Notes: a model not told the origin generated them from the sequence alone. A stretch of DNA of 42,438 nt from Octopus bimaculoides (GCF_001194135.2 NC_069008.1:15429462-15471899); one strand, 5' to 3'; positions 1,283 to 41,933 are shown, numbered from the stretch's first letter. A program made the numbers and translations.

Positions 1283-1408
1283 TGGGAGATAATTCGACTT
1301 AAATATTTCAGGACAGGAGATACGCATGCGCATTGAACGATCTTCCCCACTTCATGTTGATATCAGGTCTAATGTCCGGTGTATGAATCTCTCTTAATCA
1401 GCTGATAA
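1283..1408 (+). promoter_or_regulatory. ZNF promoter module copy P1a, interrupted by mariner
   Basis: ACGCATGCGCA 1322-1332, degenerate GATATC..AATGTC 1359-1376, TTAATCAGCTGAT 1394-1406. The mariner TIR starts right after TA 1409-1410. Confidence 0.55.
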
Positions 1409-1410
1409 TA

Positions 1411-1900
1411 TTGGGTTGGTGCATAATTATTGCGGCTTTTTTCCAGCAAATTTCATTGAACAAAAACGTCTTTAAATAACGGTTGGCTTTTCTTTTTTTT
1501 TATATATAAAAATGCGTGTCGAAAATCATATCCACATTCGTCATATTATGCTCTACCACTTTGAGAAAGGTTGGAATGCAGCACAGTCATTTCGCGATCT
1601 CAATGAACTTTTTGGTGAAGGAACAATCAGCAAAAGCCAAGTTGAAAGATGGTTCAGGAAGTTCAAGTCGGGCGATAGAAACCTCGCAGATGAAAAAAGA
1701 AGAGGTCGACCATCAGATTTCAACGACGAGGCACTTTTGGCAGCCGTGGAAGAGGACAAAAGCTTGACAACGAGAATGTTGGCCGAGGGCTTCAACGTGG
1801 ACCATTCGACCATCGTTCGTCGTCTCAAAAAGCTCGGAAAAGTAGGGAAATTGACTGGGTGGGTCCCCCACGAACACTCCAATAACAACAAAGCCGAACG
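1411..1900 (+). mobile_element. Mariner (Tc1/mariner) element, 3'-truncated
   Basis: TA followed by TIR TTGGGTTGGTGCATAATTATTGCGGCTT (Hsmar1/Made1-like). The transposase N-terminus runs to the WVPHE motif; no right TIR. Confidence 0.9.
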
Positions 1901-1925
1901 TAAAGATGTGGATGGGAAAAAATGA
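1512..1925 (+). CDS. Truncated mariner transposase (bipartite HTH DNA-binding domain only, 137 aa)
   Basis: True ATG with A at -3, no stops or frameshifts. Motifs KGWNAAQ, ERWFRKFKSG, RRGRP and WVPHE (1860-1874). No DD34D domain; the last 7 aa and the stop come from flanking DNA. Confidence 0.7.
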   Translation: MRVENHIHIRHIMLYHFEKGWNAAQSFRDLNELFGEGTISKSQVERWFRKFKSGDRNLADEKRRGRPSDFNDEALLAAVEEDKSLTTRMLAEGFNVDHSTIVRRLKKLGKVGKLTGWVPHEHSNNNKAERKDVDGKK

Positions 1926-2129
1926 GGGTAGAGGGTGATGTGCTAGCAACTCTCTCCTCCCTTACTATTTTACTAAGTAAACAACAACACATATAACCAC
2001 GCAAAGGCAGTTTGACAGTTGAGCTCTGATTGGCTGTATGCTAATGAGTTCATAACTGGGGTCCGGATCTCACGTGGGAGAACAAATTTCCCGTATGGGA
2101 CACACACATATCCACAGCAGCCTATATTG

Positions 2130-2365
2130 AAACATAAAGAGTTAATTAGACTTAGCAGACTGAAATATTTGATGACCGGAGATACGCATGCGCATTGAAC
2201 TTACTTTCTTTCGATATCCGGTTAAATGTCCTTTGCATGAATGTCTCTTAATCAGCTGATTATCACCAATTATAATATTTATAATACGTAATTATAACGC
2301 ATTTCTCAACTACCACATACATATATATATAACCATACTATCTTTTAAGAAACATTTCTGTAAGT
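2130..2365 (+). promoter_or_regulatory. ZNF-A promoter module P1b, non-coding exon 1 and splice donor
   Basis: ACGCATGCGCA 2184-2194, GATATCCGGTTAAATGTC 2213-2230, TTAATCAGCTGAT 2248-2260, donor TTCT|GTAAGT at 2360. Confidence 0.65.
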
Positions 2366-2481
2366 ATTTAACAATGAAGATATTCTATGTTTTTAATTCT
2401 GTAGACGTTCGTTTTTTTTTGCAGGAGCTAAAGATGTCCTTGTTGGATTTGGTTGCTATTTCTAATTTTCGAAGACAGATG

Positions 2482-38640: not shown

Positions 38641-38950
38641 AGCAGGGTGCTTTTATGTGGCACTTCACATGCACTTTTACACGGAAACACACATACTTTA
38701 ATGTGGTAGTACTTTTACATGATACCACACAGATGCTTTGATGAGGAATGGATACAAGTGCTTTGCGCCACCAGAGGGACGACTCTTAACACATTTGTAA
38801 TGGAGTGTGGCTCTTGGGTATAGCAAGGTGAAATGGGTCCATTGTCATATCACATGAGCAGTTCAGCATCCATACCATGTCTTTCTTGGTGTTCCATCTA
38901 CTTTGTGAGATTGGCACTTCTTTATGGAGCTGTTGTCATCCAGCTCAGAT
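38640..38950 (-). mobile_element. Ancient intronic RTE remnant (antisense to ZNF-F), with internal deletions
   Basis: GGCACTTCTTTATGGAGCTG, CTTGGGTATAGCAAGGT and GTGCTTTTATGTGGCAC blocks shared with the paralogous introns. Confidence 0.7.
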
Positions 38951-39243
38951 GTTAAGGTAAAAGTTTATTTCTACCATTTATCTCATTAGAAATGAATTTG
39001 TATTTTTTTAAATAACCTCAACATTTTACACTGATGTTTCTCTAATTTCAGAACAGAAGAATCATCTACAACATCTGCAATCTTTTAAACACTAAAGGAG
39101 AGTTAAGAAGAGCCCGTGTGCTGATTGAAGTTGGATAAATATATGTAGGCTTTGCTAAATGAAGGTAACACTGGACAGAAATACAGCAGTATATAAAAAC
39201 AAAAGCAAGAAAAATATATCAACTGGATTTGAGAGGAAAAGTA

Positions 39244-40095
39244 ATGGAAAAGAGTGAGAAAAAAATGCAATTGATTTCCCCTGAATCCATGAAAAAACAG
39301 AGGAGATCATATGACTGTGATATCTGTACAAAGTCCTTTCTTCAAAAAAGTAACCTCTTTAAGCACAAACGTATTCACACAGGAGAGAAACCGTATCATT
39401 GTGATATCTGTGGTAAATCGTTCTCTCATAATAGTATCTTAATTACACATGAACGTATGCATACAGGAGAGAGACCATATCATTGTGAGATCTGTGGTGA
39501 ATCATTCTCTCATAATAGTACCTTAATTACACATGAACGTATGCATACAGGAGAGAAGCCATATCACTGTGATATCTGTGATAAATCATTTTCTCAAAGT
39601 AATGCCTTAATGAAACATAAACATATTCATACAGGAGAGAAGCCGTATTATTGTGATGCCTGTGGTAAATCATTCTCTCAAAGTAGTACTTTGACTAGAC
39701 ACAGACGTATTCATACAGGAGAAAAACCATATCGTTGTGATATCTGTGGTAAATCATTCTCTGAAAGTGGTACTTTGACTAGACACNNNNNNNNNNTGAC
39801 TAGACACAGACGTATTCATACAGGAGAAAAACCATATCGTTGTGATATCTGTGGTAAATCATTCTCTGAAAGTGGTACTTTGACTAGACACAAACCCATT
39901 CATACAGGAGAGAAACCATACCACTGTGATATTTGTAGTAAATCATTTGCTGAGAATAGTGCCTTAGCAAAGCACAGACGTAGTCATACAGGAGAGAAAC
40001 CATATCATTGTGATATCTGTGGTAAATCATTCTCTCAAAGTTGGTACTTACCAAAACACAAATATATTCATACAAGGAAGAAAGGGGAAAAGTAG
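39244..40095 (+). CDS. C2H2 zinc finger protein ZNF-F (about 9 fingers as assembled; true count uncertain)
   Basis: First ATG at 39244 (track start 39229 is TTG). A 10-N gap at 39787-39796 is flanked by duplicated sequence. Termini nearly identical to ZNF-B. Confidence 0.8.
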
Positions 40096-40737
40096 TTTCT
40101 TGTTTTGTAATATATTTTTAATATTCCTNNNNNNNNNNNNNNNNNNNNNNNNNNNNNNNNNNNNNNNNNNNNNNNNNNNNNNNNNNNNNNNNNNNNNNNN
40201 NNNNNNNNNNNNNNNNNNNNNNNNNNNNNNNNNNNNNNNNNNNNNNNNNNNNNNNNNNNNNNNNNNNNNNNNNNNNNNNNNNNNNNNNNNNNNNNNNNNN
40301 NNNNNNNNNNNNNNNNNNNNNNNNNNNNNNNNNNNNNNNNNNNNNNNNNNNNNNNNNNNNNNNNNNNNNNNNNNNNNNNNNNNNNNNNNNNNNNNNNNNN
40401 NNNNNNNNNNNNNNNNNNNNNNNNNNNNNNNNNNNNNNNNNNNNNNNNNNNNNNNNNNNNNNNNNNNNNNNNNNNNNNNNNNNNNNNNNNNNNNNNNNNN
40501 NNNNNNNNNNNNNNNNNNNNNNNNNNNNNNNNNNNNNNNNNNNNNNNNNNNNNNNNNNNNNNNNNNNNNNNNNNNNNNNNNNNNNNNNNNNNNNNNNNNN
40601 NNNNNNNNNNNNNNNNNNNNNNNNNNNNNNNNNNNNNNNNNNNNNNNNNNNNNNNNNNNNNNNNNNNNNNNNNNNNNNNNNNNNNNNNNNNNNNNNNNNN
40701 NNNNNNNNNNNNNNNNNNNNNNNNNNNNNNNNNNNNN

Positions 40738-41125
40738 CACCTGTCTGGCTTCCATGCCAATGGCACGTAAATAGCACCATTTGAGCATAATCTTTACCAG
40801 CGTCGCCTTCCTGGCACGTGAAAAGACATTCAAGCAAGGTTGTTGCCAGTGCCGCCGGACTGGCTCCTGTGCAGGTGGCACATAAAATACACCATTTTGA
40901 GCGTGGCCGTTGCCAGTACTGCTTGAGTGGCCTTTGTGCCGGTGGCATGTAGAAGCACCCACTACACTCTCGGAGTGGTTGGCGTTAGGAAAGGCATCCA
41001 GCTGTAGAAACTCTGCCAAATCAAATTGGAGCCTGGCGTAGCCATCTGGTTCGTCATTCCTCAGTCAAATCGTCCAACCCATGCTAGCATTGAAAGCGGA
41101 CGTTAAACGAGGATGATGATGATGA
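40738..41125 (+). mobile_element. Young RTE 3' UTR with (GAT)n tail
   Basis: Matches 29780-30115; its 5' part is in the gap. Confidence 0.85.
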
Positions 41126-41739
41126 AACGATGACCCCAGGTACCAAACAGAAGTGACTACAAAGGAAGAACAAGTGGCATAAGGATAGTTTAGTGCCCCA
41201 CACTCAAGTAAAAAAAGAATTAATTTCTTTCTCTTGAAATGTTCTCTCCCACACACTCGGAAAAAAAATTTCCCCACAAATTTTTCTGTAACCGTAATCT
41301 ATGCCGTTTGAAAGGCATGTATATCAAATTTCGTTAAAAGTTATCCATTTTCATAAAACTTAAGAGGGAGAAAATGGGATATTGTGAATTTTCCGAAAGT
41401 CCTCTTCCCACCTCCCAGTTCGTTAGCGCAAATTTTTGTTTTCATATTCGTTTTCTACACATTTTTTATACCTATAACTCTCCCATTGTTCTCTCGATGG
41501 CTAGTCGTTAATGTAAACATTAACCAATTGGTGTTTTGAAACAGATTTTGCTCTCTGGGGAGAGTCGTATTGTCATAATATTTAACACATTCACCGGTTC
41601 AGCTTCCACTTATTATCATCATCCATTGACGAGGTTGCAAAAGCAATGAAAATTTTGGAAAAGTAAAAAAATATAAATAATAAATGAGTTGTAATTGAAC
41701 CGGTTTGTTAGATAACGAGCCAGTACGACTCTCCCATAT

Positions 41740-41933
41740 ACCGAAATATAAAGGGAGATAAACAAAAGAAAATAGTTGAGAGGACTTACGCATGCGCGTT
41801 GAACACATTTTGAAATCCGATTAAATGTCTTATCCGTGAATTTCTTTTAATCAGCTGATAATGCTTATAATCCGTTCCTGTCAGACACACATATATAAAA
41901 CAACACTATCCTTTGTTAAACATTTCCGTAAGT
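41740..41933 (+). promoter_or_regulatory. Promoter module, exon 1 and donor of a predicted seventh ZNF beyond the window
   Basis: ACGCATGCGCG 41788-41798, GAAATCCGATTAAATGTC 41812-41829, TTAATCAGCTGAT 41847-41859, donor at 41928. The upstream 41250-41740 is homologous to 37200-37700. Confidence 0.6.

Follow-up and report, generated by a model that had tools for sequence, protein, structure and literature searches.

Mammalian KRAB zinc-finger (KRAB-ZNF) clusters undergo birth-and-death evolution through segmental duplication, and a conserved sequence element (CSE) reportedly stands before every variable exon of the vertebrate clustered protocadherins. The factors NRF1, alpha-PAL, EWG and P3A2 share the consensus YGCGCAYGCGCR. 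In zebrafish, the znf (FiNZ) genes of chromosome 4 have a TATA box and a sharp transcription start site (bioRxiv 10.1101/2021.08.09.455629; Wells et al. 2023, PMC10547256), and regulatory divergence among cephalopod C2H2 paralogues has been inferred without examination of their promoters (PMC12513265). Here we describe a promoter-like module in a C2H2 ZNF cluster of Octopus bimaculoides. The stretch analyzed (the window) is 42,438 nucleotides of chromosome CM046628.1 (15,429,462-15,471,899, assembly GCA_001194135.2; 36% G+C, with eight runs of N), and with a right-hand extension the analysis covers 50 kb of this one cluster. Judged from its sequence, the module is probably the proximal promoter, untranslated first exon and 5' splice donor of one C2H2 ZNF subfamily, and it appears to have been copied by duplication of the whole gene unit.

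Results

A Recurrent Block with Ordered Motifs

Alignments reveal a homologous block of about 165-235 bp at all eight places where the original prediction had put a copy of a promoter and non-coding exon 1; seven copies are complete, but the first (c1) is truncated and lacks the donor motif. Each copy is numbered with the ZNF unit to which it belongs (module c2 pairs with unit U2, c3 with U3, likewise to c8/U8, and c10 with U10). The copies in the window, and the insertion that cuts the first of them, are as follows.

1281-1409, plus strand: module c1, a relic with AATGGGAGATAA, TACGCATGCGCA, GATATCAGGTCTAATGTC and TTAATCAGCTGAT; stops three bases past the E-box, without a donor
1410-1935 (right end approximate), plus strand: mariner-type fragment cutting c1, with an open reading frame (ORF) at 1512-1925 that carries a Mos1 HTH_48 domain
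2136-2368, plus strand: module c2, complete, every motif intact, donor G at 2360
16723-16924, minus strand: module c3, NRF1-like site intact, E-box lost (CAGTTG), donor G at 16731
22689-22908, minus strand: module c4, donor G at 22697; GATATC..GTC motif without its second half (deleted)
24460-24624, plus strand: module c5, NRF1-like site deleted (CATGC left), other motifs present, donor G at 24616
36038-36268, minus strand: module c6, NRF1-like site with a CpG-to-TpG change (ACGCATGTGCA), E-box intact, donor G at 36046
37708-37891, plus strand: module c7, NRF1-like and GATATC motifs perfect, E-box and TATA-like hexamer lost, donor G at 37883
41750-41936, plus strand: module c8, donor G at 41928; paired ZNF past the right edge of the window

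The first motif, ACGCATGCGCA, has seven matches with at most one mismatch (1322 plus, 2184 plus, 16900 minus, 22858 minus, 36223 minus, 37748 plus and 41788 plus), against 0.15 expected from shuffles; GATATCCGGTTAAATGTC has six matches in the window with at most three mismatches, against 0.03 expected, and TTAATCAGCTGAT and AAACATTTCYGTAAGT are likewise enriched over shuffles. The remaining three motifs adjoin the first in the order originally given, and the absence of most of the first motif from c5 is consistent with the coordinate assigned to that copy (24495), which is that of its GATATC motif. A fifth block, AAAGGGAGATAA, had been overlooked; it lies 24-50 bp upstream of the first motif, is recognizable in 8/8 in-window copies (weakest in c2, as AAAGAGTTAATT) and is exact in the out-of-window copy c10. 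Some copies have decayed motifs, with the E-box lost from c3 and c7, GATATC..GTC degenerate in c3, c4 and c6, and the CpG mutated in c6. In c2, c4 and c6, the E-box forms the center of a 14-bp perfect palindrome, TAATCAGCTGATTA.

The NRF1-like sequence TACGCATGCGCA is palindromic, contains CpG and lies 135-182 nt upstream of the exon-1 donor; NRF1 sites are similarly placed upstream in TATA-less promoters. It had been called a match to the NRF1/EWG/P3A2 consensus; five of the eight in-window copies have exactly one mismatch to YGCGCAYGCGCR, c4 and c6 have two, the site is deleted in c5, and no copy is perfect. In the window, no site within one mismatch of YGCGCAYGCGCR occurs outside the modules. 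The left half-site reads ACGCA throughout in place of GCGCA, and outside the window c10 carries the symmetric TACGCATGCGTA, so that another half-site may be preferred. We regard the NRF1-like site and the palindromic E-box as plausible candidate transcription-factor sites.

Pairing with Zinc-Finger Arrays Within and Beyond the Window

All C2H2 finger matches of the window fall within six arrays.

4392-5342, plus strand: ZNF array U2
13196-14629, minus strand: ZNF array U3
19099-20532, minus strand: ZNF array U4
25906 to about 26900, plus strand: ZNF array U5
32269-33927, minus strand: ZNF array U6
39229-40095, plus strand: ZNF array U7

For each of the six, a single complete module lies upstream on the same strand, and the distance from the NRF1-like site (in c5, from GATATC at 24495) to the ATG is 1.43-2.37 kb. 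Modules had been predicted always to lie on the strand of a ZNF 1.4-2.4 kb downstream, and the seven complete copies conform; c1 does not, being 3.0 kb from a ZNF with c2 in between. Across the extended 50 kb, 8/8 arrays (two of them outside the window) have a same-strand upstream module, with donor-to-ATG distances of 1.3-2.2 kb, and eight of the nine modules have an array, the exception being the truncated c1.

A seventh ZNF had been predicted just past the right edge, and the fetched flanking DNA contains it. This extension (L002) is identical to the window over a 13,195-bp overlap and continues 7.7 kb further right. The right end of the window coincides with the start of a 1495-N gap (42439-43933; L002 13196-14690), which covers the greater part of the c8 intron together with the U8 acceptor and leader. 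Directly past the gap lies the U8 ZNF array, on the plus strand and beginning ...LQGKIMEKSEKVEELISPEH..., with its ATG at window-equivalent 44002, 2.07 kb past the c8 donor. A further module-intron-ZNF unit follows U8, headed by a ninth module, c10 (46720-46959, window-equivalent).

Unit c10/U10 (window-equivalent): AAAGGGAGATAA at 46720, TACGCATGCGTA at 46768, CAGCTG, donor at 46951, acceptor ...TAATTTCAG ending at 47970, ATG at 48307, finger array

A Predicted Two-Exon Structure

Every complete copy ends ...GAAACATTTCY, followed by the donor GTAAGTATT, which is invariant in 8/8 donor-retaining copies and is the longest fully invariant run of the nine-copy alignment. An acceptor, ...TAATTTCAG, is conserved in 6/6 readable units and directly precedes all five exon-2 starts of the original prediction (4016, 20858, 25581, 34198 and 39052); GTTTYTCTNTAATTTCAG has four matches, against 0.02 expected, precisely at the first four of these starts, with a close variant at 39052. 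The implied junctions are 2359>4016 in U2, 22698>20858 in U4, 24615>25581 in U5, 36047>34198 in U6 and 37882>39052 in U7, with introns of 1656, 1839, 965, 1848 and 1169 bp, respectively, and none of the assembly gaps reaches a splice site listed here or a module copy. The second exons, and the ORF of U3, are as follows.

4016-5342, plus strand: U2 exon 2, acceptor GTTTCTCTATAATTTCAG directly before 4016, then 5' untranslated region (UTR) and ZNF array
13196-14614, minus strand: U3 ZNF ORF, 472 aa, 16 C2H2 fingers; a single-exon coding sequence (CDS) in GCA_001194135.2
19099-20858, minus strand: U4 exon 2, acceptor ends at 20859, 5' UTR 341 nt, ATG at 20517, ORF intact, 472 aa
25581-26900 (end approximate), plus strand: U5 exon 2, ATG at 25921
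32269-34198, minus strand: U6 exon 2, acceptor ends at 34199, ATG at 33855, ORF intact, 528 aa
39052-40095, plus strand: U7 exon 2, acceptor ends at 39051, ATG at 39244, annotated CDS 283 aa

The family ATG (AAAGTAATGGAAAAG) lies 341, 340, 343 and 192 nt into exon 2 of U4, U5, U6 and U7, respectively. An ATG located 13 nt ahead of the donor is missing in three of the eight copies (c2, c6 and c8), and in the spliced sequences the reading frames across the predicted junctions meet stops within 1 to ~60 codons. Because this upstream ATG is unconserved and stops follow early past the junction, we take exon 1 to be non-coding and reject a coding exon 1. TTATAA hexamers occur 63-90 nt before the donor in all complete copies but c7, and CTACCAGATACA, which resembles an initiator (Inr), is found some 50 nt ahead of it. 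TATA-directed initiation would give an exon 1 of about 35-60 nt, and a start near the NRF1-like site a longer one. The idea of a promoter and non-coding exon 1 facing each ZNF therefore fits the invariant donor, the conserved acceptor, the lack of a conserved exon-1 ORF and the TATA- and Inr-like blocks. From these features we infer that transcription would start in the module, that its donor would be joined to the exon-2 acceptor, and that NRF1-type and basic helix-loop-helix (bHLH)-type factors would bind upstream.

Other candidate structures were also considered and rejected. A second small intron in the leader is not credible, as the GTAAGT/GTAAAT about 110 nt before the ATG is unconserved and no conserved AG follows it; a bidirectional promoter serving both members of a head-to-head pair (c4/c5 or c6/c7) was dismissed, since 1.5-1.6 kb separates the two copies and neither lacks a module of its own. 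No consensus fold emerged when RNAalifold was applied to the exon-1/donor region, and a structured RNA was accordingly rejected; scans for Rfam families and tRNAs returned no match.

Homology Across the Whole Unit

The similarity between copies extends well beyond the module. The module plus the first 200 bp of the intron align between units at 67-86%; mean identity is 0.83 in the last ~340 bp of the intron, 0.83 in the exon-2 leader and 0.83 at the coding start; 3' flanks are 77-81% identical over up to 1.6 kb, and upstream flanks 78-92% over about 1.1-1.6 kb (e.g., 193-1281 vs 6318-7924). Compartment means across the unit lie at about 0.75-0.87, and overall the paralogous units are 75-86% identical from the upstream to the 3' flank. 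Because identity is comparable across flanks, module, intron, leader and coding start, we attribute the similarity to segmental duplication of whole units, each estimated from the alignments at roughly 6-7 kb and comprising upstream flank, module, intron, ZNF exon and 3' flank. A ~170-bp repeat resembling a short interspersed nuclear element (SINE) sits at the same intron position and in the same orientation in U2, U4, U5 and U6, and is therefore a shared derived character of the whole unit. As judged by alignment, the similarity of the modules is that of recent common descent, at about 15-25% divergence. The original prediction had proposed a portable regulatory unit; this notion does not survive, as the module always lies inside unit-wide homology and is never detached as if self-mobile.

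Homology boundaries vary from pair to pair, and the upstream flanks fall into three classes. A long flank is common to c1, c3, c5 and a relic at 6318-7924; c7 and c8 have a different one in common (76% over about 780 bp); and c2, c4 and c6 have only about 50-85 bp in common.

6318-7924, plus strand: relic of a further unit, a copy (78-92%) of 193-1281, upstream of c1; module missing

In this relic, the module is replaced from 7925 by an inverted-repeat element (arms 7928-8042 and 8504-8618), after which come ORFs like those of long interspersed nuclear elements (LINEs), at 8816-10038 on the minus strand; by its sequence it is a dead unit or a displaced flank. Broken or relic members of the cluster amount to 4/8 arrays and two relic promoters or flanks.

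Some units are mosaics. The beginning of the ZNF exon is 95.6% identical between U3 and U7 (14508-14688 vs 39171-39350), and their C termini are nearly the same, while their modules (16717-16789 vs 37831-37897) align over just 73 bp at about 80-81%, a pattern suggestive of a recent conversion or duplication confined to the ZNF exon. Similarly, c8 combines a c7-like promoter with a c5-like intron (0.96 over the first 60 bp). These mosaics point to recombination or conversion between units and not to transposition of the module. In c7, homology to other copies ends 15 bp into the intron. The U7 intron also holds a 206-aa ORF (38081-38701, plus strand; no Pfam match) in a stretch of 745 bp (37898-38642) that the other introns lack; from its sequence this stretch is probably a transposon fragment breaking the intron homology 15 bp after the c7 donor.

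Alternatives to a Duplicated Promoter

The original prediction held that the motifs stay conserved while spacers and introns diverge, as would suggest selection over passive copying. Columns were compared in the six copies with homologous introns (c3, c4, c5, c6, c8 and c10). Invariant columns make up the same share of the module (95/172) and of the intron (103/189), 55% each (Fisher p=0.92), and indel columns number 60 in the promoter part of the module vs 4 in the intron. Mean pairwise identity is 0.745 in the promoter part, 0.873 in the last 58 bp before the donor, 0.82 at intron +7..+60 and 0.785 at intron +61..+200. The introns differ mainly through indels, transposons included, and not through faster substitution. 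For substitutions, then, the proposed contrast fails, the alignable intron being as conserved as the module or more so. The prediction had named motifs no better conserved than adjacent spacers as evidence that would count against it; this is what we find for the module as a whole, and two to three blocks weakly escape it.

Those blocks bear on the possibility that the module is a selectively maintained portable cassette (NRF1-type site plus E-box), held by purifying selection for family-wide co-regulation, which we consider quite unlikely. Mean column identity is 0.95 in the NRF1-like 11-mer, 0.885 in the E-box and 0.905 at the end of exon 1, against 0.65-0.80 in spacers, but an 11-column window as conserved as the NRF1 block arose in 155/2000 column shuffles. 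Without prior choice of motif, TACGCATGCGCATTGAA and AATCAGCTGAT are among the longest near-invariant blocks of the nine copies; c7 and c8 keep the module though their upstream flank is not common with other copies; and NRF1-like sites of the window are confined to modules. Against this stand the equal shares of invariant columns and the lower conservation of the promoter part relative to intron, 5' UTR and flanking intergenic DNA. Nor do the motifs follow the fate of the ORFs: all of them persist in c2 and c10, which precede broken ORFs, the E-box is missing from c3 and c7, which precede intact ones, and only the c5/U5 pair fits such tracking. The module is, moreover, never an independent insertion. 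The claim of selection over passive copying is thus not borne out, with the module no better conserved than its surroundings and motifs kept before broken genes. The splice donor, and perhaps the NRF1-like core as well, may plausibly be under additional constraint, but that is more than these copies can demonstrate; to read conservation among young paralogues as selection, one needs a neutral reference taken from within the duplication unit itself.

Several findings weigh against passive duplication of a promoter and leader exon as the full account. Conserved columns are mildly clustered in the alignment (lag-1 autocorrelation 0.16, a value attained in 3/2000 shuffles), and nine blocks span 9 or more columns with no more than one copy deviating, eight of them in the module; some site-specific constraint is therefore possible. 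The exon-2 5' UTR is long (190-340 nt) and carries upstream ATGs, which is unusual for an efficiently translated mRNA and leaves room for a further unrecognized intron or a proximal promoter. Finally, the core-promoter assignment is loose because the TATA-like hexamers are absent in c7.

That long leader with its upstream ATGs would suit a second alternative, in which the module is a disused relic, a proximal promoter, located either in the leader or in the 340 bp that precede the acceptor, drives the ZNF exon, and GTAAGT goes unspliced. Both of these segments are indeed conserved as highly as any part of the unit (0.83), and the public models here are all single-exon CDSs, plus one obvious fusion and one model longer than its ZNF ORF. 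However, the invariant GTAAGTATT and a near-invariant polypyrimidine-TAATTTCAG are paired in every readable unit, the one outside the window included, and a 9-column invariant run would be unlikely to fall on a pre-specified functional site when ~55% of columns are invariant; we therefore hold a disused module to be improbable. That the module belongs to a transposable element or interspersed repeat lying near or carrying ZNF genes is scarcely credible: the units do stand in both orientations (+,-,-,+,-,+,+,+) in a repeat-rich region (mariner, LINE-like ORFs and the ~170-bp SINE-like element with at least nine copies), but the alignments show no common termini and variable boundaries (no search was aimed at inverted repeats or target-site duplications), there are three upstream-flank classes and homology continues into the intron, the unit has no transposase or reverse transcriptase of its own, all nine copies in the 50 kb lie within ZNF units or relics, and a scan of public metagenome contigs with the exon-1/donor block gave 0 matches, which is weak evidence.

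Gene Models, Disrupted Arrays and Assembly Gaps

Four of the eight arrays in the extended region are broken (U2, U5, U8 and U10), the last three by frameshifts. U2, whose longest ORF is 4392-5342, is probably a pseudogene, because its family ATG is lost and its first finger is frameshifted. The U5 array is disrupted by a 2-bp deletion near 26587 and by more frameshifts, and by this reading of its sequence U5 is a pseudogene. Like frameshifts occur in different fingers of U5 (26575-26595), U8 (L002 16010-16030) and U10 (L002 19395-19415). Common to the three is a 2-bp TG deletion in TGTGATATCTG[TG]GTAAATC, at the CDIC/GK junction; the TGTG repeat there could be a hotspot of slippage, or the same error could have recurred in the assembly.

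Public annotation departs from this unit structure. An 892-aa model fuses two genes, running from the start codon of U6 (33855) to the stop codon of U4 (19099) across the opposite-strand U5, a 543-aa model includes U2 and extends left of 3196, and the two ZNF arrays past the right edge are without any public gene call. Exact-product look-ups matched the U3 and U7 ORFs and found no record for those of U4 (TTG and ATG starts), U6 and U2, because the annotation fuses or extends those models. A domain scan found no effector domain in the U3 protein, and an N-terminal effector domain is absent from these octopus genes. The best 120 matches of a whole-ZNF protein search were long KRAB-ZNFs from vertebrates (35-60% identity) and included no cephalopod protein, and a profile search with five ZNF N termini gave one candidate sharing words and none that scored; in both searches octopus proteins were seemingly unindexed.

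Several assembly gaps fall inside the units. The flanks of the gap at 3725-3833, in the U2 intron, match U4, U5 and U6 in order and orientation, and the gap is probably slightly longer than 109 bp, because the paralogues have 156-255 bp between the matching points. In U3, the flanks of the gap at 14690-15136 are colinear with the paralogues, and the gap conceals the U3 acceptor and all but ~75 nt of the exon-2 leader; within that intron, a 702-bp contig (15137-15838) flanked by gaps on both sides has its SINE-like repeat inverted relative to U4 and U6, and judging from this repeat it may be misoriented in the scaffold or carry an independent insertion. The U7 array contains a 10-N gap (39787-39796) through which the annotated CDS reads. 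Finger spacing across this gap (39736-39841) is 189 bp, not a multiple of 84, so that the periodicity is off by 21 bp, and U7 has eight intact finger matches plus one split by the gap, vs 16 fingers in its close paralogue U3. Because finger periodicity is broken there, fingers are probably missing from U7 as a run collapsed in the 10-N gap.

Two families of repeats accompany the units. The ~170-bp repeat occurs in both orientations at 7111-7278, 10504-10681, 15548-15709, 18833-18936, 21306-21391, 25071-25225, 29950-30115, 34616-34699 and 40956-41125; it is probably a SINE or a miniature inverted-repeat transposable element (MITE), and no tRNA-like part was detected in it. A tandem repeat of about 49-52 bp (..GATTTGTGCGGGATTTGGCTGCTATTTCTAGCTATGGAAGA..) lies 100-230 bp into intron 1 of most units, at 35798-35933, 42019-42133, about 22470-22590 and about 24725-24845, with 98% matches between repeats in the array after c8.

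Discussion

We propose that each unit is a complete two-exon gene, in which AAAGGGAGATAA, the NRF1-like palindrome TACGCATGCGCA, GATATCCGGTTAAATGTC and the palindromic E-box TAATCAGCTGATTA would follow one another upstream of the start site. A dimeric NRF1-type factor would occupy the near-palindrome and a bHLH-type dimer the CAGCTG palindrome, with other factors on AAAGGGAGATAA and GATATCCGGTTAAATGTC, and initiation would take place in the AT-rich region of the TATA-like hexamers and the Inr-like CTACCAGATACA. Exon 1, ending ...GAAACATTTCY, would be spliced from its donor GTAAGTATT across an intron of 1.0-1.8 kb to the acceptor TAATTTCAG, joining the leader exon to an exon 2 made up of a 190-340 nt leader and the entire finger array. 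The cluster would have grown by direct and inverted segmental duplication of whole units, and the units would later have decayed as transposons inserted, segments were deleted, units recombined with one another and reading frames shifted. The promoter being part of what is duplicated, each duplicate would be born with the same one.

A shared ancestral promoter of this kind provides a baseline against which the regulatory divergence of paralogues can be measured. In practical terms, the analysis offers a two-exon model for octopus ZNFs, whose public annotation here is single-exon, fused across a third gene or missing for two arrays, together with defined splice junctions and candidate factor sites to compare with RNA sequencing (RNA-seq), cap analysis of gene expression (CAGE) and assays for transposase-accessible chromatin (ATAC). 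A more far-reaching idea is that AAAGGGAGATAA, the NRF1-like palindrome, TAATCAGCTGATTA and the leader exon front a large share of the ~1,800 octopus C2H2 ZNFs and are conserved in other octopods. We find this doubtful; if true, it would give a single cis-regulatory handle that could explain ZNF co-expression in embryonic and nervous tissue, and a sequence tag for annotating octopus ZNFs, whose public models here are fused or missing.

The proposed octopus ZNF promoter module is so far undescribed in the literature searched: the papers on cephalopod C2H2 expansion (PMC12513265, PMC9068888) do not mention promoters, exons or motifs, and we found none linking NRF1 sites or NRF1 binding to octopus promoters. 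In kind it is ordinary and expected from tandem duplication. At the level of the motif, the octopus TACGCATGCGCA resembles an NRF1 site in matching 11/12 positions in five in-window copies, in being palindromic and in containing CpG, and differs from the consensus in its left half-site (ACGCA vs GCGCA), with no perfect copy. At the level of the promoter, the module recalls the protocadherin CSE, as both place a short conserved promoter motif before each tandem member, followed by a 5' splice donor. Protocadherin variable exons, however, splice to shared constant exons and depend on stochastic promoter choice via CTCF, whereas each octopus unit is a complete gene with its own exon 2 and nothing suggests promoter choice.

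At the level of the cluster, the octopus genes have no KRAB, SCAN or BTB exon and would consist of two exons with the entire ORF in exon 2, but they show the same mixture of intact genes, pseudogenes, relics, inverted copies and mosaic members as mammalian KRAB-ZNF clusters. The zebrafish FiNZ promoter classes are defined by CAGE and expression timing, whereas the octopus module is known from sequence alone; the octopus genes also differ in having no N-terminal effector domain and in their motifs, which are NRF1-like and CAGCTG palindromes. In both fish and octopus, nonetheless, large lineage-specific ZNF arrays have arisen by local duplication, subsets of paralogues have core-promoter features in common, and the promoter travels with the gene.

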